Source of the DNA: Epithemia pelagica
Lineage: Eukaryota > Protista > Bacillariophyta
Direction of reading: 5' to 3'
DNA: 64,000 nucleotides
NCBI GenBank assembly: GCA_946965045.2
Contig: OX337241.1
Location: 558,001-622,000, forward strand
Part shown: one piece after another, positions 2,025 through 62,616 of the stretch
Layout: every line of letters starts with the position of its first letter
Numbering within the stretch: the stretch's first letter is position 1
The notes under the pieces: generated by a model
The model's input: only the letters and a program-made list of their open reading frames with translations
Told to the model about the DNA's origin: nothing
Databases searched by the model: none
Made by a program: the position numbers and the translations under genes

Positions 2025-5000
2025 TCATCGAGGAATTGCGGCCACGCTTTTCATGTAAGCGTTCCGAAGCGAATCGTCCACTTGCGGTGGATCTCTCATG
2101 TACTGCGCATGACATTGCATTGCCTTGACACCACCATTAATCCCTCCGGGCAAAACGCCTCGTCCCACACGAACCACGCCGTCATTGGGTTCACCAATCA
2201 AGGCGTGGGTGAGCATATGACAATAGTTGTATCGATCCTTGTGTTCTTCATATTGGGTCCGGTAATAAGTGACTCGTTTCCGAGCCCAGGGTTGCATATT
2301 GTCCAACCAATTTTCGGCCCCTTCCTCGGTCAAGTCGTGGACCGACCCACAGCCCAACCCAAAAATGGCGCCCATGGAAGCCGCCATTCCGGCCAGGTTG
2401 GTTCCTTGAAAGGGTGTACCCAGCGTTTGAATCCATCGTCCTTCGTATTGATTGTTGTCCAAACAACTCCAATAAAAATTATGCATGTGCAGTGCGGCGG
2501 CTCCCCCTTGGGAATGGGCCACAATGTTGCCCGACATTCCGCCCGCTTCGTAGGGACACACTTTTTGCCGAATTGCATAGGCAAACTGATCATGGGTGCT
2601 GCTGCTATAGGGGTCTTCGTATCGCACCACGGTATGTCGACCCGAGGAAAAGTGTGCCACGGGCCATGTATTTTGGGAACAATATCCGTGCACTAAAATA
2701 AATTTGTGGTTGGGCGATCGAAGTCGTCGTGGACCATGATTTGTTTCATTCCCAACCACGGAAGAGGAGGGAGACGACAAGACACGTGGTCTTCGACCCA
2801 TGCGCATTTCGTCATGAACGTCTCGCTCTTCCTGGGTTGGAACTTGACTCAGCAGTCTGCGAGCGGCCAACGTTGTCGTAGAAGTAGCCGTTGAAAACGA
2901 AGAAGAGTTGCCAAAACTCTCCCGATCAGAGTCTTGATGATGATCCGCAAAGAGACGGCGGCGATGGCCATGGGGACTGTGTTCCGTTGGTGTTGTTGTC
3001 GTAGTACTCATTCGGTGCGTAATTTGATAGCCATTGTTGGGATCTTGACAAACCACATCTTCAATGTCCACATCCCATCCCGATTCCACGTCCGACAAGT
3101 CCAAGGCGTCCAATCCTCGTCGAATCCATCCCACATGCACGACAATCAAGGGCGATTCCGGAGTCACCATGGCAGCCACATCGACAATGGAATGTTGTTG
3201 TTGTTGTTGTTGTTGACGATCCTCCGACGACACGACCCACGAGCCTTGGTCCTTTCGATCAGAACCTGGTGTCGTTTTTTCTCCCATTTTGGTGGCGGTG
3301 GTTGGTTTGGTTGTCTGTTTCTTTTGGGTGGACAGTTTGGTTGTTTCGGGTGGTGGTGATGATGATGGCTCATTGGCAGCGACCAAGACAACCAATCCGA
3401 CCCGAATGGTACAAAGCAACCGACGATGATCCGGTCCGACGTGTTGATCGTCCTTGTTTCTATTATGGGGAAGACCCGCCAAGGACACTTGGACATCGCC
3501 CTCTTGCGTCAAATTGGTGGACTCGATCCACACGGGTTGCACCGGTGGTGGTTGCCACCACGGCAAGGACCACCACGCTGGATCTTGGTCGTCTTCTTGT
3601 GGTGATGGTGGTGGTGGCGTGGACAAGAGATGGCTTCGTTGGTAGACATGTCCATCGTGGGTTTCCACTTCATAATGCAACACCACGACCAAGTCCTTGT
3701 GGTTCCGGTCGTCGTCGTCGTCAGCACTGGTCGTCGCAGGAGTGCTGGGAGGATGCTCGCTCTCCGTACTCCACTCACCAGAAGTCGACGCATTCAAGAC
3801 GGTATTGTTGGTCCCCCTTCGCCAATCATCTTCTCCCACAATGGCCAGCACATTGTCATGACGACCATCGAGGACTCGTTCCATGATTTTATTGATTTGC
3901 ACATGGACCATGTGTTGTCTTCGTGGAGATCTCAAGGACGTGGACGAACCATTGTTGTTGTTGTTGTCATCATCATCATCATCATCATCATCATTCGAGT
4001 CGTCTTGGACCGTCCTTCTCCTTCTTTTCCTTCGTCGGTGTGTGCCGCCATTTGGCAGCGGCAAGGGCGATTCAAAGGCTTCGACTTGAACGCCTCGAAT
4101 GGTGGCGGTGGAATCCACCAGGGTGGGCCGCACCACTTGACGTGTCTTGGTGCGATTGCCGATTCGAATCCGTTGCAAAAAGGATTCCACCACGACGCCT
4201 TCCTGGCGATTGACTTGATCCAACATGACCACGACAAAGTCCACCGCTGAGGAGGACGACTGTTTGTCATCGTCCTTGTTGTGATTGTGGTTGTTGTGCG
4301 CTTTGGGGGTGTGTTTGTGTGGTTTGTGGGTACGACTGTGGTGGCTTGCCCTGGCAGCCGTAGCCGATGGAGCCGTGCACGAGACTTGGACTCGCGAACC
4401 TTCGGGAGGCACGTTGGAATAGTCAAAGGGAAATCCAATGGATCCTTCTGAATCGGACAAGCCAAAACAATTGTGCAGCAATTCCTTGTTGGTTGTTGTG
4501 GAATGGTTGGTCGTTCGGGTGGTGGCAATGGGAAAGGAATGGGAATGAAGAATTCCCCTTGCTCCGGGAGCAATTTGCAACTCGAGTTGGGGGACATGCA
4601 AGGGCCAGGACGACAAGACCGCCTCATTTTCATGGACATCTTGGAGGGGTATGGGAAGACACACCACTCCATGGCCCGCACCCGAACTCAATTTGAATTC
4701 CATGGTATTCTTCGAGGATGATGATGGATCACACGAGGCAAAGACAATGGAAGCTTGGGACGTGGCATTGGAGGACCACCAGGAAAAGGGTTTTTGGTTG
4801 TTCTGGTGGTTGGTATTGAATTCTTCTTGTTGTTGCTTGGCATCGCGTCGTTGGTTTGGTACCTTGTCGGACAAGCGACGCGATTGTTGAATGAGGGATT
4901 CATCGGCCACCATTTTGGCATGCAGCAAGGGCGGCTGGGCCTGGCACTGGGGACACACCCACCACCCAACGCCCACCAGAACAAGTACCAGTACCTCCAC

Positions 5001-9842: not shown

Positions 9843-10498
9843 GGTTAGTTTGCTTTCAAACTGGATAAATGGATCACCTCAAACAATGAATCAAATCTTG
9901 GTTGCAAAGGACACTGGAGACTACCGTAATCAACACACGATTCCAAAACACGGAAAGAAGCGAAGGGTATTGGTTCACTGGAATGATGGGGGCGATCACT
10001 GCGTGTAGATTGTGTCGGATTTTGCGGCGATATTATCGCGTGTGGTGTGCGGTGCGGCAGTATTTTGCCCGTTGACCTGCTGCCTTTTATTTTTATGGGT
10101 TGCTCTGGTCGTCACGTGTGCGGGTGTCGTCTGGGGGGCCGCACACTTGTTGGACACCTTTGGAAAACGATATGAAATATGAAGCTTTGGGGATGGTCCC
10201 GAGCGGTCCCGAGTTTCCACAAGACCCTCTATGAAGTCCTAATCACACCGCCACCGCATCTCAGATGGAGTGTAACGGTCAAAGCCTGTCCGTCGACCAA
10301 GCACTTGAATCTTCCGTTGGGATTGGCATCCATAGTACTGGAACATCGCGAAATTGCCTTTTGCGCCTGATGGTCAGCAACGTCGGCAACATGACACTCA
10401 TAGCAAAGGCTCGTAGCAGTGGTAGCTTACCAAGTCAACCTATAGATACAATCAGTTGGCATACAAATAGACAACTAACATTCATTAGTCATTAGGCA

Positions 10499-47504: not shown

Positions 47505-50500
47505 TTAAGGGTACGATGCATTACTGGGATGGTTGGAACAAGATTTGTCATGGGGTGGGATGCCCCGACGATTGGGCCTCCGCCAATACTGAATATTGCG
47601 GATGCAACAATTTTGAGTCGGTTGTGGATGTGTTGGTTGTTGATGGACCGGTTGGCAACCAAGGTACGACGAGTAATACACCGCTTGCTGCAGCAGCTGT
47701 TGCTGAAAGTGATGAACACTAGCAAGCGGCGTATTTGGCGGAAGCAATGGTGGAAGTGATGGCATTTGTGGTTGTGGCATGGTGATTGGTCTGGGGGCCG
47801 GTTGTATTGCTATTCTTGGTGGCGATTTGGGAGCAGGTTGCTGTTGTGTTTGTGGTGGTGGTCGTTGTGGTCGTGTTGGAGAAGACTGTTGCACTGTTGG
47901 AGCTGGTGGTGGCGGCAGCTCCTCCTCCTCATCACTCAACATTGGATCATCGTCATCTGCTTGGTTTGCTTCGTCTTGATGCTCTTCTTTTTCCTCAACT
48001 TGTTGCTCTTTTTCATTTTCTCGTGATTGTTCTGTATCTTGTTGTTCCAGTGTCTCGCTTGTTTGCATTGTTTCTTCATCTTGCATATTGCGCTGAGCCT
48101 CACATTTCTCACAGGGACAGAAGTCATGCTGTTGGACCGAGATGTTCCAGACCTCGTTGAGTTGCTCATAAACTTGCAAGTACTCAGAAAAAAAGCGTTC
48201 ACCATTGTCTTGCGGTAAGTGCTCGACGTCATCAAACAACTTGGATGCGCCGCATCGAACGGCCAACTTGTTGATAAAGGCAAGTTGCTGGTGGTTCCAA
48301 TGACTCACCACTGTTTCCCACGCCGCAGACATTTTCTTGTTGCGTTGTTCCGTTGTCTTCGACACAAAGCGCAGCTTGTGTCGAATCTGACGGTTGTACC
48401 ACGCCGTTCCGCACAAGTTCAAGTCGTCCGAGAGTTTTTCATTTGTGCCCCCATTACTGAAATGGGCCAAGTTGTTGTGCCATGACTCCAATTTGGATTC
48501 CCCTCGGTAAGAGACCCATTCGGACAATTGATGGCTTGATTTCGGGTGTGGTTTGATCTCACGATACATGTCTTCGATTGGAATCGGATCTGCGAGAAAC
48601 TCTGCCTTTTTTTAAACAGTTTTCGATTGCTGAGTGTGTATCTTGTGTGAACAATGGTTGTTGTGTCTTGTGATCGAGCCTTCCTCGTGCCGGTGGCCCA
48701 CTGTCACTACTACTTCTCACTTTATATTTTATCTTCCACTCCTCCAGGCGCATCACGATTGTTTGGAACGCGCGGATGATTTTCCGTAAGTACTTGCCGT
48801 ATCTTTCGCGAAAAACCTTGGTCTGTCTCATTTCTGCTATTTGCTTGTCATTATATTTCTTGCCTCCAAGGGTGCCATTCTTCAGGGCCGTGATGACTTT
48901 ATGGAAGTCACCATCGTGATACTCGTAGATGCAATCCAACAATTCGCGCAACGCGTCACCAAAGTCCATGTGTTTACGGCGCAGGGTCTTCATAATTCGC
49001 TGGAGGAAATGAAAGAGTCCCAGTCTTGGGACTACATCTTCACCCAACAATCCAACCCAATAATCACTCTTGTGGGGGAATGTGTCGGAATAGATGACGC
49101 TCGGGTTAAAATTTCCACGGTTGTTGGGCAGCATGGGAGAAGGTCTTGGTTTCCAAGTTTGGAACCAAGATTGCACATGCAATCTCGCCTACTTCATTGG
49201 CAGCATCCCATACAGCTTCTGCCTTGAGCCTCTTGGGATAGTTCTTGACTGCTTGGAAGGTGTGGTCTTGGGCAAAACTTGTTTGGCAGCCCACTGCTTG
49301 GATTTCCCTGGTGTGCCTCTCATAGTCACTTGCTCTCCAGGGATTGAGTCTGGATCTTGATGCCTCGTGGTAGGCCTGTCTGATTGTCTCACCAAGAGGA
49401 GGATACCTGGTGAGCCACTCTCCATCTTTCGCTGGATACTCTTGCCCTTGCTGATGTGTTGCATCGCAGAAGGAGTAATAGTTAGTTATTCTATTCCTAT
49501 AATCCCTGTTGATTGCAGCATACAATAGTCCACTACAGTGGTCACCATTGCCATAGGTAAGCATCTCCTCCTCCAACACTGTTGTTGTTGTAATGTCGAA
49601 GTGCTGGGCACCTCGAGCCCACTTTGCTTCGACCGGATACCATTTCGCAAAATGTGGATGCAACGAATTGAGAAGTGCTCCGTCGTTGCCGGCATGCGTG
49701 GTATTGCACTCCTTGCAATGGTAGTGCGTGACAAGGGCGTAAGACGGTGCGCCATCAAGACCAAAAATGGGGAATAGACTTTTGCTCTTGGAAAGGTTGG
49801 TCCGCTCGCGTTGTAGTGTACAGTTGTTACACTTTGGACACTTAAGCCCAATTTTCTGAAACTCCACCGGCATAAACAGCTCCCAGTCAACAATGTACAA
49901 ACATCGCCCTACAATTGAGTCCCACGGGGCATTATTGTTGTTTCGCACGTCGGGTACAGTCAAACACATGTCGCGCATGAACGGCTTAAGTGACCGCACG
50001 TCGCGCTTCCGTTCCAAACAAGTTTCGGCGATAGTCTTGGCAAGCGCGTACATTGTTTTCGGACACGTGATCGACTCGTCTTGTTCTATCTCCTTGTATT
50101 TAGCCAGTACCGATTGCATAAATACATACTCATCCGACCCAACGGCGGACGTCACCTGATTATTGATCAGGCAGTCCGTGCGCGCAATACAGTTGCGCTT
50201 CCCCTTTCGAACCCTGGAAAGTTTCAAATCGTCCTCTGTCACGGTCGTTGCTTCATTTGAAGCTTCCGAGACAGGTTTATTGTTGAGACGAAAGAAGAGG
50301 TTGAAATCTTCTTGCCTCATGATGATTGGATGGTAAGTCACTTCCTTGTTGGCCTCTTTCTTCAGTCGTTCCTCCTCCTTCATGGCCTCTACCAAGTGGT
50401 CTGGTATGCCCCTGGTCTTTGTGTTCTTTGGGCAGAAGACGTGATGGGGGCGCTTGGGAGGCTTGGTCCCAAGCCTTTTGGAACTGTAGATGGTGCAGTC

Positions 50501-50827
50501 CCTGTCTGGCTCAAAGGCCTTTTTCTTCTCAAGCGTGAGCTGCCTCAACTGCTTTGCCTCTTGTTGCTTCCTCTTCTTGTTGCTTCTCTGTTGTGCTAAC
50601 GACTTTGCCCTTTTTGTTTGGTTGTTTCGTCGTTGACTCTGCCCACCCATCTCTTGCTCCTTGCTGAGCTTTTTGTATGGGTTCACCACCAAGGGTGCTG
50701 GTGGTGGTGGAGGAGAGTCATTCTCCTCAGGGACAGTCATCGTGGTTGGGTCCATTGTTGCTCCAGAAACATCGACACCATTGTCCATGTCCTGGGGCAC
50801 GGCAACCGCGACCGGCCTCATTGGCAC
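47505..50827 (-). pseudogene. Large DDE-type transposase-like ORF (Mutator/ISL3-clan-like) broken by two frameshifts
   Basis: Three consecutive overlapping ORFs (573+207+354 aa) join at ~49120 and at an A7 run at ~48607-48613 (KKAEFLADPIPIEDMY is restored by removing one A). Motifs: CPKC/HCKEC, QDHTF, NEVGEI, YSDTFP, RLGLFHFLQRI, RGESKLESWH. Element ends were not found. Confidence 0.6.
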
Positions 50828-52080
50828 GGAATCGTGTTGGAGACGAAATCCCTGTCGTTTCGGCTGTTTTCGTGAGGAAGTCGGTTCCGTGGCTTTTTGC
50901 GCGTGGCGCGCGATGTCTACTGGTAAGAGAAGACATGTCTTGTGTGAGTTTTCGTTAAGTATTTTGATGTCTTGTCTATGTCTTGTGAGTTTTCTAACCC
51001 AATCATATTTCTGCCTTCTATTTCGTGAGCCCCTACTTATCCTTCAACCGGAATACTGGGCGTCACAGAACGACTGCATTGGACAGTAATTGACGCAGAA
51101 TGGCCGCAGAGTAAGCAGTAAGACGTAAGCCAGTCTGAAGGCTTAGGGCTTAGGGGGAAGTAGGTGCTTTAGGCTTTAGGCTCTAATCCTACTTTCTACG
51201 TAGGAGTAGGAGTATTCGTACCATTACTTGTGATTTGGTATTATTATTTGGTATATCGAAGGAGAAAAATATTGGTTGCAGTTTAAGCTCTCCTACAAAA
51301 GTGCTAACTCCAATGTCAATGCTCAATTCTAAGTTTGAGAGAGCGAGTAGTAATAAGGACTGTAAACTTAGGCAACAAAAAGTTTTGCTTCAGTAAATAT
51401 TGTAAAGTTTAGGTTTTGAAATTTAGGTAGCTATGCATAGTTAACAAAAGGGAAAAGGGCCTACCTTAACTTGGGTGGGCATGGCGTTGAGTATCGTAAT
51501 TTACGAAAACTTCTGCACCTCAACTTAGGCCGAGAAACTTCGGCTAAGAAACTTGAAGACCCTAAGTATTATACTCTATGGTACTCATACTTTATTTGAC
51601 TTGTTTAGACGAAAGTCAATTGCCAGGACGGGAAATTTGAAAGATAAAAAAAATCCAAAATCCAAAATCCCACAAAACAAGATGATAAACAAGCGAGATT
51701 TGAGTAGTAGTAGTTTTGGAGGACGCGACAGAAGTGCGAGTGACGACTGTCTAGTCTACACCAAGATCAAAAACCGGCGTGCGCATTTAGCGAACTAAGA
51801 AGTAGTATTACTTCCCGGCCCTAGGTGGGAAAGAAACTAAACTAGTATTCACACTCTTTGCTGTTTTCGATCTGTGATATTGACCTACGAGACGAACCTG
51901 CCCAACAGACATCCAACGCGCAGCTAAGGCCGCCAAACTCTTTTCCGTTCGCCTAATCGGCTTCTTCCGAACTGGACCTGCATCCTCGAGACTAGTCGGC
52001 ACTGTGGTTGTCGATCCGAAGCCCCGCAAGACCCAACTCGGAAGCTACTACCGACTAATCTGGTAAACCTGAATTCCGCC

Positions 52081-55000
52081 GTGAAACCCAGACTTTTCCA
52101 AGCACCAGCAAGCCGAAGAGAAGTTAGAGCCCAAGCGACAAAAACGAAAGTCTACCGTGGAAAGATGAGTGAAGCCAAACCTACCCTAAGCGTTGACACG
52201 TCTGTCGGAATGGCAAAACCCAAGGGTACGACCGGAATCGGCCAGGAGACGGAAAACAACGACCATAACCGTCGTGAGGAAAAGCTTCGGAAATTGGTAC
52301 GAATGCTGGCCGAAGAGGTCTCGGAACGCTTCGTCCCGGCCCCCACGGAGGACGAACGCACTAATGATGCTATAAACGGCATCGGTGACTTCAAAACCCG
52401 ATGCCGTTGGGCTGAGTTTTGGCGTAATGAGCACAAGGAGAGAACCGAAACCGAACAAGCTGTGTGGGCGAATTATTACACCAACAACCCCTCACTACTC
52501 TCAAAAGCCCAGTGGGAGAAATCAATCACTGACCCCGAATGGCAATGGCCAGACCCGTTCTCCGGAAAGAACTACAAAGAAGAGGCCGAGGACGTGGAAG
52601 AAGAAATCCTAATCTCTGGCCTCCAAAGTGGTGTCAAACCAGAGCACAAACGCAAAAACGCACCCGTAGGCTCAAACGAGTTGGAATGCTTCCTAAAACA
52701 AGTCGAAGAAGCAATCATCAATGAGTCACTTACCAATAAACCGACCCGTAACGAAAACAAGCTGTCTCTGGAGTTCAAGGACATACTCAAACAACTCCGC
52801 GAGTTTGATCTGGTGGCGATACCCACGGACAAAACAAACTCGTTCACGCTAATGTCATCCAGGGAATACGCGAAAGAGATCAAGATTCACCTCGACAAAA
52901 GTGCAGTCCGTATCAACAGGTCCAAACTCAATGAAATTGTGGAGAACTGCTTCTCATTCATCACGGAACTCGACCGCTATCTGTCCAAGAACGAGAGGGA
53001 GTTTCTGAAAGAAAAGGTGAATTCGAAAGCGATTCCCCAACCGAAAATCCTGGTCAAGGACCACAAAAAAAAGAAGAACTCGAATGGATCGTACCCTACC
53101 AGACTCGTGGTCCCTGCAACCAACTTCACTGCTGGATTCCCAAAGATTGGATACCTCGGTATCAAGAACTTATTCAAGAAGCACAAGGTTGAGTTCGGAC
53201 AACGCAACATAGTCCAAGCGTCGGATCTCAAGGACAGGTTGGAGAAGTTCAACATCAATGCAGGAAATGCCACAATCGTTTCAGTCGACGCAGAGGCGAT
53301 GTACCCATCAATCAAGTTCCAGTTGATCTATGATGCAGTACAGTACTACGCCGAAGCTATGCCCCCAGAAACCAACAAAGCAATCAGCCTGTGTCTCGAC
53401 CTTATCTTCTTTGGGATGTCGAACACATTGATTTCGTTCCAAGACGGGTTCTACCTCTACGACGGCGACAAAAAACCCGAAGAACGAGGATTGACGATAG
53501 GCGGCTACGAATCAGCCTGGCTGGCGGATTTGGTGATGTCATACCTCCTAGAGGTGACATACGACACACTCTACGACCCGATGCACTTCTTCGGAGTCTA
53601 CAGAGACGACGGGTTGGCGGTGTTCAAAGGCAAAAAGACTACAAACGAAATCCAAGAGTGGCTCGAATCTTTTCAATCTGACATCGACGACATAGCTGGA
53701 AACAACTTTTTGAAGTTTACGGCAGTGGTGTGGGACCCATTAAACCACCACTCAGAGTGGGACATCTCCAATACTGCGATCACGGTTGACAAATCCCCGT
53801 CGTTTCCCTTCCTGGATATGGAGATGTATTGGCTGAGTGAGCAGTCGCTAGCCTTCAGAGTCCACTTGAAGAAGAACCAACAACTCAAGTATCTCAACAA
53901 AGGTAGCTCGCACACTCCGGGATGCTTCAAAGCGATTCCCAATGGAGTGATCAAACGCCTAACCAAGCTCACATCAATCAACGATTCAAACAGCAACCAA
54001 ACTCTCAACGAGCTGTATCCAACACATTTCCAAGCCCTGTCCGACGCGAACTTGATTAAACCAGATCAAATCCTGACCTTGGCAGACTCCATAGACGAGA
54101 TGGAACGAGCGAAGAATGATGAGACCTCAAACGCAACCAAGAAAGGCCGCGATAGAGACCGGAAAAGAGCGATCTACTTTAGGATTGGGTACTCCAACTT
54201 CTGGAGGAGGCCCATCCACAAAGTGATCAAGGAGATAAAAGGACGCTTCCCCTCCCTGTCCTGGTTACGCGTGTCAATGTCCTACCACAGGTTCACGAAT
54301 ATCCGTGAACACTTCCAGGGCGATTTGAACACCAAACTATCGGACACATTGAGATCCCTAGACTTCGAAGATCTTGATTGTAACTGCAGGAACAAGGAAG
54401 CCTGCCCCTACGGTGGGAAATGCAGGCGTTCGATAGTAGTCTACAAAGCGACGTGTCTCAAAACGGGCAAATTCTATATCGGCAACACGCAACAACACGT
54501 AAAAAAGCGAATGCAACAACACGTTCAGGATGTCAAAGCCTTAGTCCTCCAGAACAAGAGCTCCGACTCTTTTGCAAGCCACTTTGCGGCGTTCGTCCCG
54601 AGAGACATTCCGAAAAAGGAAATGAAAAACCACGTGAAATTGCGAGTCGAGCTCCTATGGCAAGGGAAGCCTCTTTCAACCGTAAAAACCTTCGGCACGA
54701 AAACGTGCAAACTCTGCGCTCGAGAGAGATTGGAAATCCTACGGGCGACCAAATTCAACCCCAAACTAGCAATCAACAAGTGTAACGAAATATACGGCGA
54801 ATGCCGCCACAAACCGAGATTTCACCGGTTCCCGACAAACAACAACAACCCCAGCACTGATGAGTCGATAGACGACGAAAGAGTCTCTATCTGTCGGCCT
54901 GTCTCAACCACGTCAACTGACTCGAGCTATTCTTGCTTCACGTGGACCTCGAACCTGTCCCCCAACACGACTACAACAAACGATGTAAACAACTTTGGTG

Positions 55001-55230
55001 AGGACAGGAGGGACGAGAGCTTGCTCAATGAAATCCCTTCGATGTCCTACCAAGAAAGGCGACTTGAAGGCCTCAAAGCGAGGTTTGCCTTCAGTATCCC
55101 GAAGACCACTCCCCCAGTGATCCAAATGGACGATAGCAAACTTGAGGACCTACCGACCGCCGAAGAATCTTTGATGACTGATGATGTAGTTTTGGAGGAC
55201 GCGACAGAAGTGCGAGTGACGACTGTCTAG
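52081..55230 (+). CDS. Penelope-like RT + C-terminal GIY-YIG endonuclease, copy 1 (first ATG 52165)
   Basis: PTDKTN, PTRLVV, IVSVDAEAMYPSI, GLTIGGYESAWLA and YRDDGL (RT); CNCRNKEACPYGGKC linker; SIVVY..FYIGNT...KRMQQH and CKLC (GIY-YIG). Confidence 0.92.
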   Translation: MKPRLFQAPASRREVRAQATKTKVYRGKMSEAKPTLSVDTSVGMAKPKGTTGIGQETENNDHNRREEKLRKLVRMLAEEVSERFVPAPTEDERTNDAINGIGDFKTRCRWAEFWRNEHKERTETEQAVWANYYTNNPSLLSKAQWEKSITDPEWQWPDPFSGKNYKEEAEDVEEEILISGLQSGVKPEHKRKNAPVGSNELECFLKQVEEAIINESLTNKPTRNENKLSLEFKDILKQLREFDLVAIPTDKTNSFTLMSSREYAKEIKIHLDKSAVRINRSKLNEIVENCFSFITELDRYLSKNEREFLKEKVNSKAIPQPKILVKDHKKKKNSNGSYPTRLVVPATNFTAGFPKIGYLGIKNLFKKHKVEFGQRNIVQASDLKDRLEKFNINAGNATIVSVDAEAMYPSIKFQLIYDAVQYYAEAMPPETNKAISLCLDLIFFGMSNTLISFQDGFYLYDGDKKPEERGLTIGGYESAWLADLVMSYLLEVTYDTLYDPMHFFGVYRDDGLAVFKGKKTTNEIQEWLESFQSDIDDIAGNNFLKFTAVVWDPLNHHSEWDISNTAITVDKSPSFPFLDMEMYWLSEQSLAFRVHLKKNQQLKYLNKGSSHTPGCFKAIPNGVIKRLTKLTSINDSNSNQTLNELYPTHFQALSDANLIKPDQILTLADSIDEMERAKNDETSNATKKGRDRDRKRAIYFRIGYSNFWRRPIHKVIKEIKGRFPSLSWLRVSMSYHRFTNIREHFQGDLNTKLSDTLRSLDFEDLDCNCRNKEACPYGGKCRRSIVVYKATCLKTGKFYIGNTQQHVKKRMQQHVQDVKALVLQNKSSDSFASHFAAFVPRDIPKKEMKNHVKLRVELLWQGKPLSTVKTFGTKTCKLCARERLEILRATKFNPKLAINKCNEIYGECRHKPRFHRFPTNNNNPSTDESIDDERVSICRPVSTTSTDSSYSCFTWTSNLSPNTTTTNDVNNFGEDRRDESLLNEIPSMSYQERRLEGLKARFAFSIPKTTPPVIQMDDSKLEDLPTAEESLMTDDVVLEDATEVRVTTV
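54852..54893 (+). ncRNA. Minimal type I hammerhead ribozyme motif, copy 1
   Basis: CAGCA-CTGATGA-GTCG-ATAGA-CGAC-GAAA-GAG-T-CTC-TA-TCTG: conserved core, 4-bp stem II and a near-palindromic minimal stem III. Stem I has a bulge. Confidence 0.65.
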
Positions 55231-55556
55231 TCTACACCAAGATCAAAAACCGGCGTGCGCATTTAGCGAACTAAGAAGTAGAATTACTTCCCGGCCCTAG
55301 GTGGGAAAGAAACTAAACTAGTATTCACACTCTTTGCTGTTTTCGATCTGTGATATTGACCTACGAGACGAACCTGCCCAACAGACATCCAACGCGCAGC
55401 TAAGGCCGCCAAACTCTTTTCCGTTCGCCTAATCGGCTTCTTCCGAACTGGACCTGCATCCTCGAGACTAGTCGGCACTGTGGTTGTCGATCCGAAGCCC
55501 CGCAAGACCCAACTCGGAAGCTACTACCGACTAATCTGGTAAACCTGAATTCCGCC

Positions 55557-58500
55557 GTGAAACCCAGACTTTTCCAAGCACCAGCAAGCCGAAGAGAAGT
55601 TAGAGCCCAAGCGACAAAAACGAAAGTCTACCGTGGAAAGATGAGTGAAGCCAAACCTACCCTAAGCGTTGACACGTCTGTCGGAATGGCAAAACCCAAG
55701 GGTACGACCGGAATCGGCCAGGAGACGGAAAACAACGACCATAACCGTCGTGAGGAAAAGCTTCGGAAATTGGTACGAATGCTGGCCGAAGAGGTCTCGG
55801 AACGCTTCGTCCCGGCCCCCACGGAGGACGAACGCACTAATGATGCTATAAACGGCATCGGTGACTTCAAAACCCGATGCCGTTGGGCTGAGTTTTGGCG
55901 TAATGAGCACAAGGAGAGAACCGAAACCGAACAAGCTGTGTGGGCGAATTATTACACCAACAACCCCTCACTACTCTCAAAAGCCCAGTGGGAGAAATCA
56001 ATCACTGACCCCGAATGGCAATGGCCAGACCCGTTCTCCGGAAAGAACTACGAAGAAGAGGCCGAGGACGTGGAAGAAGAAATCCTAATCTCTGGCCTCC
56101 AAAGTGGTGTCAAACCAGAGCACAAACGCAAAAACGCACCCGTAGGCTCAAACGAGTTGGAATGCTTCCTAAAACAAGTCGAAGAAGCAATCATCAATGA
56201 GTCACTTGCCAATAAACCGACCCGTAACGAAAACAAGCTGTCTCTGGAGTTCAAGGACCTACTCAAACAACTCCGCGAGTTTGATCTGGTGGCGATACCC
56301 ACGGACAAAACAAACTCGTTCACGCTAATGTCATCCAGGGAATACGCGAAAGAGATCAAGATTCACCTCGACAAAAGTGCAGTCCGTATCAACAGGTCCA
56401 AACTCAATGAAATTGTGGAGAACTGCTTCTCATTCATCACGGAACTCGACCGCTATCTGTCCAAGAACGAGAGGGAGTTTCTGAAAGAAAAGGTGAATTC
56501 GAAAGCGATTCCCCAACCGAAAATCCTGGTCAAGGACCACAAAAAAAAGAAGAACTCGAATGGATCGTACCCTACCAGACTCGTGGTCCCCGCAACCAAC
56601 TTCACTGCTGGATTCCCAAAGATTGGATACCTCGGTATCAAGAACTTATTCAAGAAGCACAAGGTTGAGTTCGGACAACGCAACATAGTCCAAGCGTCGG
56701 ATCTCAAGGACAGGTTGGAGAAGTTCAACATCAATGCAGGAAATGCCACAATCGTTTCAGTCGACGCAGAGGCGATGTACCCATCAATCAAGTTCCAGTT
56801 GATCTATGATGCAGTACAGTACTACGCCGAAGCTATGCCCCCAGAAACCAACAAAGCAATCAGCCTGTGTCTCGACCTTATCTTCTTTGGGATGTCGAAC
56901 ACATTGATTTCGTTCCAAGACGGGTTCTACCTCTACGACGGCGACAAAAAACCCGAAGAACGAGGATTGACGATAGGCGGCTACGAATCAGCCTGGCTGG
57001 CGGATTTGGTGATGTCATACCTCCTAGAGGTGACATACGACACACTCTACGACCCGATGCACTTCTTCGGAGTCTACAGAGACGACGGGTTGGCGGTGTT
57101 CAAAGGCAAAAAGACTACAAACGAAATCCAAGAGTGGCTCGAATCTTTTCAATCTGACATCGACGACATAGCTGGAAACAACTTTTTGAAGTTTACGGCA
57201 GTGGTGTGGGACCCATTAAACCACCACTCAGAGTGGGACATCTCCAATACTGCGATCACGGTTGACAAATCCCCGTCGTTTCCCTTCCTGGATATGGAGA
57301 TGTATTGGCTGAGTGAGCAGTCGCTAGCCTTCAGAGTCCACTTGAAGAAGAACCAACAACTCAAGTATCTCAACAAAGGTAGCTCACACACTCCGGGATG
57401 CTTCAAAGCGATTCCCAATGGAGTGATCAAACGCCTAACCAAGCTCACATCAATCAACGATTCAAACAGCAACCAAACTCTCAACGAGCTGTATCCAACA
57501 CATTTCCAAGCCCTGTCCGACGCGAACTTGATTAAACCAGATCAAATCCCGACCTTGGCAGACTCCATAGACGAGATGGAACGAGCGAAGAATGATGAGA
57601 CCTCAAACGCAACCAAGAAAGGCCGCGATAGAGACCGGAAAAGAGCGATCTACTTTAGGATTGGGTACTCCAACTTCTGGAGGAGGCCCATCCACAAAGT
57701 GATCAAGGAGATAAAAGGACGCTTCCCCTCCCTGTCCTGGTTACGCGTGTCAATGTCCTACCACAGGTTCACGAATATCCGTGAACACTTCCAGGGCGAT
57801 TTGAACACCAAACTATCGGACACATTGAGATCCCTAGACTTCGAAGATCTTGATTGTAACTGCAGGAACAAGGAAGCCTGCCCCTACGGTGGGAAATGCA
57901 GGCGTTCGATAGTAGTCTACAAAGCGACGTGTCTCAAAACGGGCAAATTCTATATCGGCAACACGCAACAACACGTAAAAAAGCGAATGCAACAACACGT
58001 TCAGGATGTCAAAGCCTTAGTCCTCCAGAACAAGAGCTCCGACTCTTTTGCAAGCCACTTTGCGGCGTTCGTCCCGAGAGACATTCCGAAAAAGGAAATG
58101 AAAAACCACGTGAAATTGCGAGTCGAGCTCCTATGGCAAGGGAAGCCTCTTTCAACCGTAAAAACCTTCGGCACGAAAACGTGCAAACTCTGCGCTCGAG
58201 AGAGATTGGAAATCCTACGGGCGACCAAATTCAACCCCAAACTAGCAATCAACAAGTGTAACGAAATATACGGCGCATGCCGCCACAAACCGAGATTTCA
58301 CCGGTTCCCGACAAACAACAACAACCCCAGCACTGATGAGTCGATAGACGACGAAAGAGTCTCTATCTGTCGGCCTGTCTCAACCACGTCAACTGACTCG
58401 AGCTATTCTTGCTTCACGTGGACCTCGAACCTGTCCCCCAACACGACTACAACAAATGATGTAAACAACTTTGGTGAGGACAGGAGGGACGAGAGCTTGC

Positions 58501-58706
58501 TCAATGAAATCCCTTCGATGTCCTACCAAGAAAGGCGACTTGAAGGCCTCAAAGCGAGGTTTGCCTTCAGTATCCCGAAGACCACTCCCCCAGTGATCCA
58601 AATGGACGATAGCAAACTTGAGGACCTACCGACCGCCGAAGAATCTTTGATGACTGATGATGTAGTTTTGGAGGACGCGACAGAAGTGCGAGTGACGACT
58701 GTCTAG
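55557..58706 (+). CDS. Penelope-like RT + C-terminal GIY-YIG endonuclease, copy 2
   Basis: Same 1049-aa ORF with five amino-acid differences from copy 1. Confidence 0.92.
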   Translation: MKPRLFQAPASRREVRAQATKTKVYRGKMSEAKPTLSVDTSVGMAKPKGTTGIGQETENNDHNRREEKLRKLVRMLAEEVSERFVPAPTEDERTNDAINGIGDFKTRCRWAEFWRNEHKERTETEQAVWANYYTNNPSLLSKAQWEKSITDPEWQWPDPFSGKNYEEEAEDVEEEILISGLQSGVKPEHKRKNAPVGSNELECFLKQVEEAIINESLANKPTRNENKLSLEFKDLLKQLREFDLVAIPTDKTNSFTLMSSREYAKEIKIHLDKSAVRINRSKLNEIVENCFSFITELDRYLSKNEREFLKEKVNSKAIPQPKILVKDHKKKKNSNGSYPTRLVVPATNFTAGFPKIGYLGIKNLFKKHKVEFGQRNIVQASDLKDRLEKFNINAGNATIVSVDAEAMYPSIKFQLIYDAVQYYAEAMPPETNKAISLCLDLIFFGMSNTLISFQDGFYLYDGDKKPEERGLTIGGYESAWLADLVMSYLLEVTYDTLYDPMHFFGVYRDDGLAVFKGKKTTNEIQEWLESFQSDIDDIAGNNFLKFTAVVWDPLNHHSEWDISNTAITVDKSPSFPFLDMEMYWLSEQSLAFRVHLKKNQQLKYLNKGSSHTPGCFKAIPNGVIKRLTKLTSINDSNSNQTLNELYPTHFQALSDANLIKPDQIPTLADSIDEMERAKNDETSNATKKGRDRDRKRAIYFRIGYSNFWRRPIHKVIKEIKGRFPSLSWLRVSMSYHRFTNIREHFQGDLNTKLSDTLRSLDFEDLDCNCRNKEACPYGGKCRRSIVVYKATCLKTGKFYIGNTQQHVKKRMQQHVQDVKALVLQNKSSDSFASHFAAFVPRDIPKKEMKNHVKLRVELLWQGKPLSTVKTFGTKTCKLCARERLEILRATKFNPKLAINKCNEIYGACRHKPRFHRFPTNNNNPSTDESIDDERVSICRPVSTTSTDSSYSCFTWTSNLSPNTTTTNDVNNFGEDRRDESLLNEIPSMSYQERRLEGLKARFAFSIPKTTPPVIQMDDSKLEDLPTAEESLMTDDVVLEDATEVRVTTV
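58328..58369 (+). ncRNA. Minimal type I hammerhead ribozyme motif, copy 2
   Basis: Identical motif exactly 3476 bp downstream of copy 1. Confidence 0.65.
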
Positions 58707-60008
58707 TCTACACCAAGATCAAAAACCGGCGTGCGCATTTAGTGAACTAAGAAGTAGAATTACTTCCCGGCCCTAGGTGGGAAAGAAACTAAACTAGTAT
58801 TCACACTCTTTGCTGTTTTCGATCTGTGAGATTTGAGTTATAATTACTTTTTCCCGCTCCAGTCGTCATTCGTCATTCCTCTTTTCTTCCCGAACCGTGA
58901 CTCAGATGCCCAGCCACAAGAGATAAGAGATACTCCTAAGAGATAAACAATAAACACACCCTGCGACAGACTGATTTCCACTGGGATCTGGGATCTGGGA
59001 TGAAGAGAGGAACTGTCAAAAGGACGAGAACAACTCCCCACAACACATTTCCATTATTCAAGCAGCCCATACTACTATTATTCTATACACCTATGCCCCT
59101 TTTAGAGATTATAGTACTCCTATCTTGCATCTTCCGAGATCCGAACCGATGACCATAACATCTAACAACATCATCTTTTTGATGATGTCAAATCACATTC
59201 CCATTTTCCCCATAATTTCTTATATCCCAAATCCCAAAACCTTCACTCTGACAATCGATCGCAGCGTATTCGCATAGATTCGCATTTGGGTATCAGTGAG
59301 TTGCTTCAAATCGATCTTGGATGTTCCAAAGCTTCTAGAGCTCCACGGAATTCCTAGGTGAATGTTCTACGTGAGCTCCATGGAATTCTTTGTCCATGGT
59401 CTCCGGGTGTTGATTATCTCAAGCGTTTTAGGAGTAGTAGACATTATAATTATAGCCATTGGCACGCGAAAGCTTCAATCTTCGTTTCTCTCTCTATGGC
59501 ATCCGAAGGAGGTAGGAGTAGAATTATTCTAGTGGCTCCTACTAGGTATGCAGGCAGGTGAACTTCGCTAGCTAGGGGTCGAACATGAACCTTAGATCAC
59601 CTCGGCTATCAACCGTCATGACTCTTTTGTCAGGAGGACCGTTCCAATGGACGTCTTACATGCCCCAAGGTGACGTATCAATGAGAGAGCGGACAACCAC
59701 TACTACACACATGCAGTAGGTCAAGACAGGATCCAAAGTAGTGGGTAAATCATAATACTATACAGTCTCCAGCGTTGGCGTTAGGGGATTGATTCTTGAT
59801 GGTAAAAAGTGGTGTTGACAGTTCAACGAATGATTCGTGTGGGTGATTCTCCAGTCCTCGAGTCGCAACTGCGGTTGCTATAAGACTGTTAGCAGTTTGG
59901 AAAGGTGCCGTGGCTCGACCATGGGCTCCGCAAGGAGACCCACCGTCCATAGTTCCAAAGTGCGGCAGCCTTGTTCTTTGTAACTCGTCGTCATCGCCGC
60001 CTGTCTTT

Positions 60009-62616
60009 TTACACATCTTGTAGCTGCGGCACTTTTTGACGTTGCGACAATCGCAAAATGGTACCTCGAATGTGGTGCGAGTTCAATCCCGCTTGTTCGT
60101 ATTGCTGGTATTGGGAGGCGGCTTCAAAGTAGGTATCGGGAATGACCATGGGTCGGAACTTGAGCTTACCGTCATCCAAGGCGCCGTCCAAGGACAAGAA
60201 ATGAAGGACGTGATCGCCAAAGCCACCAATCGATCCTTCTTCGACGGTAATCAAGACGGAATGTTCATCGGCCAATTGACGGACCAAATCCACATCCAAG
60301 GGCTTCATAAAGCGGGCATCGGCGACGGTAACGCCCAAGGTAGGGTCCATGTCTTCCACTTCTTGCGCCGCCACCAAGGCTTCGTGCAAGCGAGTTCCAA
60401 AGGACAAGATTGCCACCCGATCCGCCTTGGACTTGCCTCGGACCGCCGACTCGTCACGGTTAAAACCACCCGGACGACGGATGATGCGTCCCTTTCCAAT
60501 CGGCACGACTTGAGCCTTGGGCAAGGTTCCATCCGCGTCGAGCTCGTATCCAAAGAGCGATTGCAACTTGTCGGCACCGTATCCGGTTCCACGAGGGTAT
60601 CGGCAGACGGACGGACCCTTGTCAAAGGCGGCTTGCGTCGCAATCATGTTGCGCAATTCAATTTCATCACTGGGCGCCATAATGGTCAAATTGGGGATGC
60701 ATCCCAAATAGCTCAAATCGTAGCAACCATGATGGGTGGGACCGTCGTTTCCAACCAATCCGGCGCGGTCCAAGACCATGCGGACGGGCAAATTTTGAAT
60801 GGCTACATCGTGCACCACTTGATCGTACCCACGTTGCAAAAAGGTGGAGTAAATGCAGCAAAAGGGCTTGAGGCCTCGCGTGGCCATACCGGCCGCCATG
60901 GTCACGGCATGTTGTTCGGCAATGCCCACATCAAAGGTGCGCTTGGGAAAGCGGCGGCCAAACAAATCCATTCCCGTGCCACCGGGCATGGCGGCCGTAA
61001 TACCGACAATGCGACGATCTTCCGTGGCCGAATCAATCAAGGCATTGGCAAAAATCGAGGTCAAACTGGGAGCAATCGGCTTGGACTTGATTTGTTGGCC
61101 CGTGCCCAAGTTGAATTTGGCCACACCGTGCATACGATCACTGGCTTGTTCGGCGGGTGGGTATCCATAGCCCTTGACAGTTTTCAAGTGCAACAAGACG
61201 GGCTTGGTGTCGGTGCTGTCTCGCAATTTTTCCAAAATGGGCACCAAATTGTCCAAATCGTGACCATCCACAGGTCCCACGTAATAAAAGCCCAATTCTT
61301 CAAAGAGGGTACCACCCGAGACAATACCACGAGCATACTCATCAATACGCTTGTTCACGTCTTGAATTCCTTCCGGCAAGAGTTTGTTGAAGGACTTGGC
61401 AAAGGACCGAATGTCTTGAAAGGGTTTAGAGACCAAGAGATTGGACGTGTAGGTGGAAAGTTGGGAGGCTGGCACCACTCCACCCGCACTGGGTGTTCCA
61501 GTGGGGAGACTGACTTGTCCATTGTCGTTGAGAATGACAATCATGCGGTTTTTCAAATACCCCGCCGAGTTCATGGCTTCATAGGCCATTCCACCGGTAA
61601 TGGCACCATCTCCAATCACCGCAATACAATTGTTTTGCCGAGGAGATGATCCCGTCATGGACTTGGCAATGGACATGCCCTGGGCGGCCGAAATCGAAGT
61701 CGACGAGTGACCGGCCCCAAAGGAATCGTATTCACTCTCCTTGCGTTTGCAAAAGCCGGAAATACCACCGGCTTGTCGGAGGGTCGACATGCGTTCCCGT
61801 CGGCCCGTCAAAATCTTGTGAGGGTAGCATTGATGCGAAACATCCCAGATAATATCATCTTGTGGCATGTCAAACACATAGTGCAACGCCACCGTCAGTT
61901 CATTGACACCCAAGGAGGAACTCAAGTGACCGCCCGTTTGCGAGACGGATTCCAAAGTTTCCCATCGCAACTCGTAGGCCAATTGCTTCAATTGCCTCAA
62001 GTCCAGCTTTTTCATGTCGGCCGGAGACGAAATGCTATCCAAAATGGGCTTGACGGCCGGTCCAGCGTAGGGAGGACCGGGGACCGAGCTGCTACTACTG
62101 CCACTGTTGCTCCCAGTGCCTTCGGCCGCGGCCTGGTGCAACCGACTGGTGCGGGGACCAGCCCATAAAGTGGATGTCGTGGTAAAGGCCGTGGCCTGTT
62201 ATAACGTGGAAACCCATCAGGATGATCGAGAGTCGCATCGAGAGCCATCCATCCAGCAAAAAGGCAAAAAAAGAGCAGTTCGACAGGTGTAAGACCCAAA
62301 AGATACCTTGAAGTAACCCGGTTCTTGAACAAGAGATTCCAGAGACTTGGTGGGGCGCAACGCGATGGTGATGGGTGTGTACGGGTGGACGACCCATCAT
62401 GGCGGCATTCAAGCCGGTCCACAATTTCTCATGGTCGAGCACGAAACCCTCCCATCCAGAAAGAGCCATGCTTCACCTGCTCAATGGTCGCTTTCTCGCG
62501 TTGCCACACTTGTACGCTGGATTCCGGCTCACACAAGAAGAACATAGAGAGATACTTGCAACACATACCTCCAAGGCCAGAGTGGCTGCCATGAGGACGC
62601 TCAATTGGAACTTCAT
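60009..62616 (-). CDS. DXS: 1-deoxy-D-xylulose-5-phosphate synthase, plastid-targeted; exons 62616-62569, 62195-60009 (744 aa)
   Basis: GGHLSSSLG, DVSHQCYPHKILTGRR, AGHSSTSISAA, IGDGAITGGMAYEA, LNDN, DVGIAEQHAV and YSTFLQR. A 373-bp GTATGT...ACAG intron joins the signal peptide MKFQLSVLMAATLALE to ATA-FTTT. Confidence 0.95.

Follow-up and report, generated by a model that had tools for sequence, protein, structure and literature searches.

The window analysed here, a 64,000-nucleotide stretch of the Epithemia pelagica assembly (contig OX337241.1, positions 558,001 to 622,000), contains a Penelope-like element (PLE) encoding a reverse transcriptase (RT) followed by a C-terminal GIY-YIG endonuclease (EN). 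We conclude, with a probability of about 85%, that this is an autonomous PLE of a diatom-resident lineage, that a concatemer of 2.05 units was inserted in one event by target-primed reverse transcription, and that the element carries a putative hammerhead ribozyme split into two distant halves. The array (51706-58827, 7.1 kb) consists of two near-identical copies arranged head-to-tail and a truncated leader, the sequence repeating every 3476 bp between 51710 and about 58829 (~2.05 units in total), and a single 11-bp target-site duplication (TSD), GAGATTTGAGT, brackets the whole of it. The initial annotation had described a single copy with a TSD around one open reading frame (ORF); the duplication is real, but it encloses the entire array, and a second intact ORF in the open frame 55557..58706 turns the supposed single copy into a tandem 2.05-mer. 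This layout, with full units behind a truncated leader and a single TSD around them, is the standard form of PLE insertion (PMC8557442). The features lie as follows, in window positions.

51695..51705, no strand: left TSD copy, GAGATTTGAGT, identical to 58828-58838; read contigs run on from 51705 into 58839.
51706..51709, plus strand: AGTA at the 5' junction, matching neither target nor element when the junction is compared with the internal unit sequence.
51710..51877, plus strand: 168-bp 5'-truncated leader (pseudo-long terminal repeat, pseudo-LTR), matching the final 168 bp of a unit, with one difference from unit 1.
51853..51863, plus strand: putative hammerhead substrate half in the leader (ACUC-UU|UGCUG), predicted cut 51858/51859.
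51878..55353, plus strand: unit 1, 3476 bp, with 5' untranslated region (UTR), ORF and 3' UTR, from periodicity and sequence comparison.
52165..55230, plus strand: unit 1 ORF, 1021 aa plus stop, its ATG start supported by homologues beginning there.
52762..54084, plus strand: reverse transcriptase, aa 200-640, with DKT motif, RT1-7 and thumb; AlphaFold2 (AF2) model folded with 30 relatives, predicted local distance difference test (pLDDT) 91.
54379..54423, plus strand: Cys-rich linker C739-x-C741-x5-C747-x5-C753, its four Cys nearly invariant in 30 relatives.
54433..54831, plus strand: GIY-YIG endonuclease lacking CCHH; CxxC precedes E854 and CxH follows N871 (Pfam, AF2).
54852..54885, plus strand: putative hammerhead enzyme half of unit 1 (CAGCA, CUGAUGA, helix II GUCG/CGAC, GAAA, helix III GAGU), encoding STDESIDDERV.
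55329..55339, plus strand: putative substrate half of unit 1, predicted cut 55334/55335.
55354..58829, plus strand: unit 2, 3476 bp, its 3' boundary ambiguous at 58827-58829 where GA is common to the TSD.
55641..58706 (open frame 55557..58706), plus strand: unit 2 ORF, 1021 aa, intact, from the ORF list and comparison.
58328..58361, plus strand: putative enzyme half of unit 2, from the sequence scan.
58805..58815, plus strand: putative substrate half of unit 2, predicted cut 58810/58811.
58828..58838, no strand: right TSD copy, identical to the left one.

PLEs are recognised by the fusion of a telomerase-like RT with a GIY-YIG nuclease, and because the encoded protein has this composition, with the RT first and the GIY-YIG domain C-terminal, the element is Penelope-like. 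The frame 52081..55230 is open throughout, as first annotated; its 1049 codons are counted from a mechanical GTG start, and the actual start is the ATG at 52165. Motifs of the RT can be read directly (PTDKTN, TRLVVPATNF, SVDAEAMYPSI, GLTIGGYESAWLADL, YRDDG, FLKFT, FPFLDMEM), residues D375, R480-D481-D482-G483 and T221-D-K-T-N225 are invariant among relatives, and the best PDB matches of the RT model are telomerase RTs (Tribolium 3du5 at 3.6e-9, Candida, human), followed by R2 and LINE-1. In the endonuclease the blocks VVYKATC...FYIGNT are present, as is CKLC ahead of the catalytic E, and Y760, Y771/G773, R782, E854 and N871 are conserved in relatives. The EN model (aa 690-895, pLDDT 86) best matches I-TevI (probability 0.92-0.96, E about 0.1), with T4 EndoII, Hpy188I and UvrC-N as further matches, all of them GIY-YIG nucleases. 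Thus the full RT, the CxC-x5-C-x5-C linker and the GIY-YIG domain with CxxC that the initial annotation had listed all hold. In Pfam the window copy scores 20.1 bits for GIY-YIG, under the 22.6 cut-off, and has no RVT_1 match; its relatives exceed the cut-offs for both families (23-28 bits for GIY-YIG), and many carry a precomputed annotation of the PLE-associated family DUF8422. PDB sequence matches of the protein and the family profile to designed leucine-rich repeats were rejected as spurious, one short motif being matched repeatedly. The thumb motif IPxGVxxRLxKLT (aa 587-612, window about 53923-54000) resembles the leucine-rich-repeat consensus.

Near its 3' end each unit carries the parts of what comparison of sequences indicates to be a type-I hammerhead, with a gap in helix III of about 120-570 nt across the family (about 450 nt here) and a core that doubles as codons of the ORF tail. 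Each unit has a single match to the pattern CUGANGA...GAAA (54857-54880 and 58333-58356), located within that tail, and among relatives reaching the C-terminal FHR motif the core lies 19-37 nt past it in 27/29. From the stop codon to the predicted cut site there are 104 nt, and from there to the end of the unit another 19 nt. Since the pseudo-LTR leader holds only a substrate half, the predicted cut in the leader would need the core of the next unit. A contiguous type-I hammerhead formed from the core-flanking bases and GUC 54883-54885 was considered and rejected, as no locus has helix I complementarity for it.

Evidence for mobility comes from read contigs of three runs of one organism, in which 81-88% of sampled words of 51000-59500 are present. 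One contig per run (1850, 1737 and 447 nt) shows an exact empty site with one TSD copy, the left flank running to 51705 and then into 30 bases identical to 58839-58868. Empty and filled versions of the insertion site occur in the same runs at flank-like depth, and contigs contain the unit-end to unit-start junction as well as both variants at 52576/56052. The empty site is likely the other allele of the filled site. Absence of junction reads had been named at the outset as what would point to a contaminant or chimera; the left and internal junctions are both found in contigs, together with the empty site. Other genomic copies are 5'-truncated at 54894, 54902, 55257, 55313 and 55326 (contig ends), the 3' ends of copies joined to unrelated flanks fall at 55345, 55355 and 55358, within a 13-nt window, and summed contig depth climbs toward the 3' end of the element. 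Truncations, clustered 3' ends and 3'-rising depth are the usual traces of target-primed reverse transcription. The element shows signs of recent activity, in line with the suggestion that it is currently active.

The other copies offer some further observations. One contig fuses (CCCTAA)n telomere-type repeats to a copy truncated at 55257, so that some copies lie in or at telomeric repeats, which recalls the telomere-attached EN-deficient PLEs. High-depth contigs from two runs return from 54947 to 54902 with one extra T; these represent other copies with a ~46-nt tandem duplication in the variable C-terminal tail, directly 3' of the hammerhead core.

GIY-YIG nicking combined with target-primed reverse transcription is established for Penelope, and we propose a similar course here. 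The GIY-YIG domain would nick the target and the RT would copy element RNA from the nick; microhomology priming fits, because GA at the 3' junction is common to the element and the TSD. Transcripts spanning two cleavage sites may be trimmed by the hammerhead to exactly one unit. The template would be either a circular RNA, re-ligated and then copied through more than two rounds (2.05), or an uncleaved multimer, and copying beyond one round would restore the leader-plus-unit layout required for the next cycle. Genomic 3' ends of copies lie 11-24 nt beyond the predicted cleavage site and the three cleavage-site junctions of the array are identical, with no added bases; because the 3' ends lie past the cut site and the units are joined seamlessly, the copied template probably had an intact junction, which argues for a re-ligated circle or an uncleaved multimer. 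Seamless junctions and 3' ends do not separate the circle from the uncleaved multimer.

Several points weigh against the reading of a one-event concatemer insertion by a diatom-resident PLE with a split hammerhead. The element is known here from its DNA, and its transcription, self-cleavage and circular RNA are proposals. The contig comparison spans 51300-57299 and thus the left and internal junctions of the array. The empty-site contig has three differences at 51541-51546; because of these and of the repeated left flank, the empty site could be a duplicated locus rather than the other allele. (The left flank, about 51434-51565, equals a repeat found elsewhere in the genome, and several contigs leave the window sequence at 51564/51565.) A nine-site difference between the units, with its unit-1 asymmetry, is not predicted by one-pass copying of a single template. 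Rfam returned no hammerhead on 51000-59500 (E<=10), and on a 211-nt segment only Hammerhead_3 at 15.1 bits (E 1.2), below threshold; the misses would be explained by the helix III loop, which has grown to hundreds of nucleotides. The case for the ribozyme is a comparative one throughout. Finally, the clade placement given below uses diagnostic motifs and one canonical outgroup rather than a curated reference set.

The alternative that fares best concerns the template. The concatemer could derive from linear RNA, through uncleaved read-through of a tandem donor or an RT jump between two processed linear RNAs, and we regard this as a real possibility, though one we do not favour. End-to-end template jumping is established for other target-primed RTs. 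Tandem donors exist, both in this array and in relatives, and the differences between units 1 and 2 would follow from copying two different RNAs. However, all three cleavage-site junctions are identical and free of added bases, and the 3' ends reach past the cut site into sequence that a processed linear RNA cannot template.

Formation of the two-unit array after insertion of a single copy, by unequal exchange or local duplication, or its creation as an assembly artefact, is improbable. What speaks for it is the distribution of the nine differences between units that are otherwise 99.74% identical, each with an intact 1021-aa ORF. About 7/9 are derived in unit 1 (window 52576, 52732, 52783, 53115, 54074, 54800 and 54981) and 1 in unit 2, and all five amino-acid changes fall in unit 1, with P637L and A879E at conserved positions, the unit 2 ORF keeping the family-consensus residue at all five. 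Plain decay does not explain this asymmetry, because equal decay of initially identical units would be symmetric. In addition, the unit-1 letters at 54074, 54800 and 54981 are not seen in contigs. On the other side stand the unit-end to unit-start junction and both 52576/56052 variants in the contigs, the standard PLE form of a truncated leader and full units in one TSD (PMC8557442), and the occurrence of the same form in relatives, where partial tandems are found at loci L002, L004 and L084. Metagenome contigs L002 and L004 each have two hammerhead substrate sites, 3704 and 2832 nt apart, and thus represent partial tandems with other unit lengths. L084, a sister-subfamily copy, shows short inverted 3'-end fragments (4033-4424 and 10397-10453) beside a pseudo-LTR, an inverted-copy arrangement known for PLEs, and has a piggyBac-like DDE_Tnp_1_7 ORF between the element ORF and the distal 3'-end copy.

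It is very unlikely that there is no ribozyme and that the hammerhead-like core simply reflects a conserved peptide (STDESxxDERV) or chance. The sub-threshold Hammerhead_3 score would suit this explanation, as would helix I and III arms of only 4-6 bp, and ribozyme activity is a prediction. But the same RNA core is read in three phases with unrelated peptides (..TDE..DER.. versus ..LRTRLTQKK.. in one subfamily), which argues that the constraint is on the RNA, and it is identical or compensated between subfamilies otherwise saturated at synonymous sites. Moreover, the core arms covary with the distant substrate site. For every locus we looked downstream of the core for a U-H site with flanks complementary to both core arms, and found a match at a distance of 123-566 nt in 18/23 loci, against 15% with foreign arms. 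Helix I arms occur as CAGCA/UGCUG, CAGUG/CACUG, CAGUA/UACUG, CAGAA/UUCUG and GACA/UGUC, and helix III arms as A-GAGU/ACUC-U, A-AAGU/ACUU-U, A-AAAGU/ACUUU-U and A-AUUGUCA/UGAUAAU-U. Across the 18 two-half hammerheads, positions 1-4 of helix I, 0-4 of helix III and 2-4 of helix II are paired in every sequence, with 2-4 pair types at each variable position and a constant A15.1-U16.1 pair; pairing in helices I and III is partly built in, as these were found by complementarity, whereas helix II was not so selected and pairs without exception at positions 2-4, with four types of pair. The minimum-free-energy (MFE) fold of 54846-55346 closes helix I.

Relatives of this PLE are numerous (62 proteins at 36-98% identity in the first search and 98 by profile search), and a metagenome scan recovered 103 family loci from microbial-mat, marine and other metagenomes. 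Their consensus, over 29-30 relatives, has invariant TDKTN, RWKEF (RWAEF in the window copy), the CxC-x5-C linker, CxLCxxE and N...CRH, and no CCHH. These are features published for the Hydra clade, in which the EN is C-terminal, DKG is replaced by DKT, and an RWK motif and a divergent RT4(B) are present; CCHH is missing, the linker reads CxC-x5-C, and E and N are flanked by CxxC and CxH. Its hammerheads are canonical, its targets (TA)n, its elements shorter than 3 kb and its hosts aquatic invertebrates (PMC8557442). Beyond the family, the profile matches Hydra-type P0157 (E 3e-23) and then the canonical PLE P0158 with DKG and CCHH (E 1e-5). P0157 has at least 2004 relatives of about 700 aa on 2.3-2.9-kb contigs, including proteins from the bivalve Solemya velum and the bryozoan Watersipora subatra, and the group shows ADKT/S, MRWKAF, CNC-x5/6-C, CNLCxxE and N..CRH, without CCHH. 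By the published diagnostics it is the Hydra clade, an identification made from motifs rather than labelled references. A maximum-likelihood tree (794 columns) was built from 29 rows of the diatom family, 25 of Hydra type and one canonical outgroup. Support is 100/100 for the Hydra-type group and 93/90 for the diatom family, and the two are joined by branches with lengths of 3.2 and 1.2 substitutions per site. Subfamilies of its own assembly are the companions of the window copy (100/100), and a Cylindrotheca protein falls in a different subclade. By motif and tree, then, the family shares the Hydra-type protein architecture yet is a distinct deep lineage; with a single canonical outgroup, a sister relationship of the two groups is no more than a possibility.

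The evidence favours a resident, under-described diatom lineage over a recent transfer or a contaminant. Two more subfamilies, with intact ORFs and ~70% DNA identity, lie on 1.07-Mb and 1.24-Mb contigs of the same assembly; their proportions of differences to the window copy are 0.79-0.82 at synonymous sites (pS, saturated) and 0.18 at nonsynonymous sites (pN). Since pS is saturated, pN is 0.18 and the ORFs are intact, the protein has been kept by purifying selection through a long diversification in this genome. The Cylindrotheca fusiformis protein (EukProt) places a family member in another, pennate, diatom. A resident clade is favoured because of the three intact saturated subfamilies, the member in a second diatom and the >4 substitutions per site to the nearest animal group. 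The initial annotation had offered either horizontal acquisition or an under-described clade; the second stands, whereas a recent acquisition of a Hydra-clade element from an aquatic invertebrate is highly unlikely. The diagnostic motifs are indeed common to bivalve and bryozoan Hydra-type elements, and both kinds of host are aquatic. However, the groups split at 100/100 on the long branches given above, the ORF is about 1000 versus about 700 aa and the unit 3.5 versus 2.4 kb, the hammerhead architecture differs, the three resident subfamilies are saturated at synonymous sites and a second diatom has a family member. An ancient transfer between diatoms and animals, in either direction, is a separate possibility. 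That foreign DNA, animal or other, was joined to diatom contigs as a contaminant or chimeric assembly is scarcely credible: the assembly does come from a collection of metagenome assemblies and relatives are plentiful in metagenomes, but filled and empty sites occur in the same runs at flank-like depth, the TSD is precise, the assembly has the other subfamilies on contigs of 1.07 Mb and 1.24 Mb, and the flanking DXS is diatom-like.

That DXS, a DXP synthase gene (60012-62141, minus strand) 1.2 kb downstream, has a nearest cluster of mostly Bacillariophyta members. The remaining close neighbours of the array are transposons, and the first description of an element embedded among diatom genes is borne out in part. 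A 573-aa ORF upstream of the insertion (49106-50827, minus strand), with weak matches to the KDZ transposase CxC5 cysteine cluster and DUF6729, is probably a fragment of a KDZ-type DNA transposon.

Eight PLE clades are known, with Hydra found only in animals (PMC8557442; bioRxiv 10.64898/2026.07.22.740005). The C-terminal EN+ PLEs published so far come from animals and, through one transfer, from conifers (PMC8557442), in agreement with the background given in the initial annotation. PLEs were unreported in the TSAR supergroup (telonemids, stramenopiles, alveolates and Rhizaria) before Chlamys in Ectocarpus, and only N-terminal-EN Chlamys elements were described there (PMC12477816, 2025). The diatom PLE hammerhead variant on record, from Thalassiosira oceanica, is linked with telomeric PLEs that lack an EN (Cervera & de la Pena 2014, PMC4209133). 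We found no C-terminal EN+ element, and hence no catalogued counterpart of this clade, in the open literature on diatom and stramenopile PLEs, a search outside which Repbase and subscription journals lie. A type-I hammerhead with helix III interrupted by 120-570 nt and its core in an ORF would also be new.

An intact, diversified and apparently mobile RT-then-EN lineage in diatoms broadens the known range of PLEs. The Hydra clade, otherwise isolated, gains a relative outside the animals, and this matters for the question of where C-terminal EN+ PLEs arose. Standard hammerhead descriptors can miss ribozymes in PLEs scored as lacking them, and here 34 nt would double as ribozyme core and codons. 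How PLE tandems form could be tested here in a tractable case: the 2.05-unit insertion is clean, its empty site is preserved and the algae are culturable. A broader model, which we put forward tentatively and hold to be possible rather than probable, is that diatoms host an ancient C-terminal-EN PLE clade, counterpart of the metazoan Hydra, that replicates through a split hammerhead, circular RNA and rolling-circle target-primed reverse transcription. If true, the C-terminal-EN architecture predates animals or crossed between diatoms and aquatic invertebrates, and rolling-circle copying would explain the partial-tandem form of PLE insertions.

Among known systems the Hydra clade is the closest, with which the diatom family shares an RT followed by a C-terminal GIY-YIG domain, the DKT, RWK, linker and CxxC/CxH motifs, the absence of CCHH, a divergent RT4(B), a hammerhead and partial tandems. 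The diatom family differs in its ORF of about 1000 aa and unit of 3.5 kb, compared with about 700 aa and under 3 kb, and in keeping an N-terminal G-T-S-x-K-F-V-P block where the N-terminal GxKF/Y of the Hydra clade is not conserved. The target here is GAGATTTGAGT rather than (TA)n, and the host is diatom-like rather than an aquatic invertebrate. In Hydra-type loci L085-L089 a minimal type-I hammerhead lies uninterrupted in the UTR (GAAAC, a palindromic AAAUUU forming a short helix III, GUA), whereas the putative hammerhead of the diatom family is split, with its core in the ORF. Canonical PLEs (Penelope/Poseidon, Neptune, Nematis) have the same domain order, pseudo-LTR, tandems, 5' truncation, telomerase-like RT and hammerhead near the 3' end, but they carry CCHH in the GIY-YIG core, DKG and another linker, and their identity to the family is only 22%. 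The element had been called canonical, which is apt for its domain order; its endonuclease, without the CCHH of Penelope, Neptune and Nematis, is of Hydra type and its predicted hammerhead non-canonical.

Other stramenopile and protist PLEs are more distant. The Chlamys PLEs of Ectocarpus are likewise EN+ in a stramenopile, but have an N-terminal EN, a CxC domain before the RT, an insertion in the fingers domain (IFD) and usually no hammerhead (PMC12477816). EN-deficient telomeric protist PLEs have PLE-linked type-I hammerheads with a large helix III (PMC4209133); they lack an endonuclease and are telomeric, whereas the element described here has an EN, a TSD and an interstitial site, and its putative hammerhead is interrupted by hundreds of bases and overlaps coding sequence. 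The discontinuous hammerhead of the rodent Clec2 3' UTR (Martick et al. 2008, cited in PMC4209133) likewise has strands hundreds of nucleotides apart, but it belongs to a cellular mRNA rather than a retrotransposon and does not double as codons of an ORF. Non-LTR retrozymes form tandem units, each with a type-I hammerhead, and have a proposed cycle of self-cleavage, circular RNA and reverse transcription (bioRxiv 10.64898/2026.07.22.740005; PMC5680766). They are non-coding and depend on PLE enzymes, whereas the hammerhead proposed here would be part of an autonomous element.

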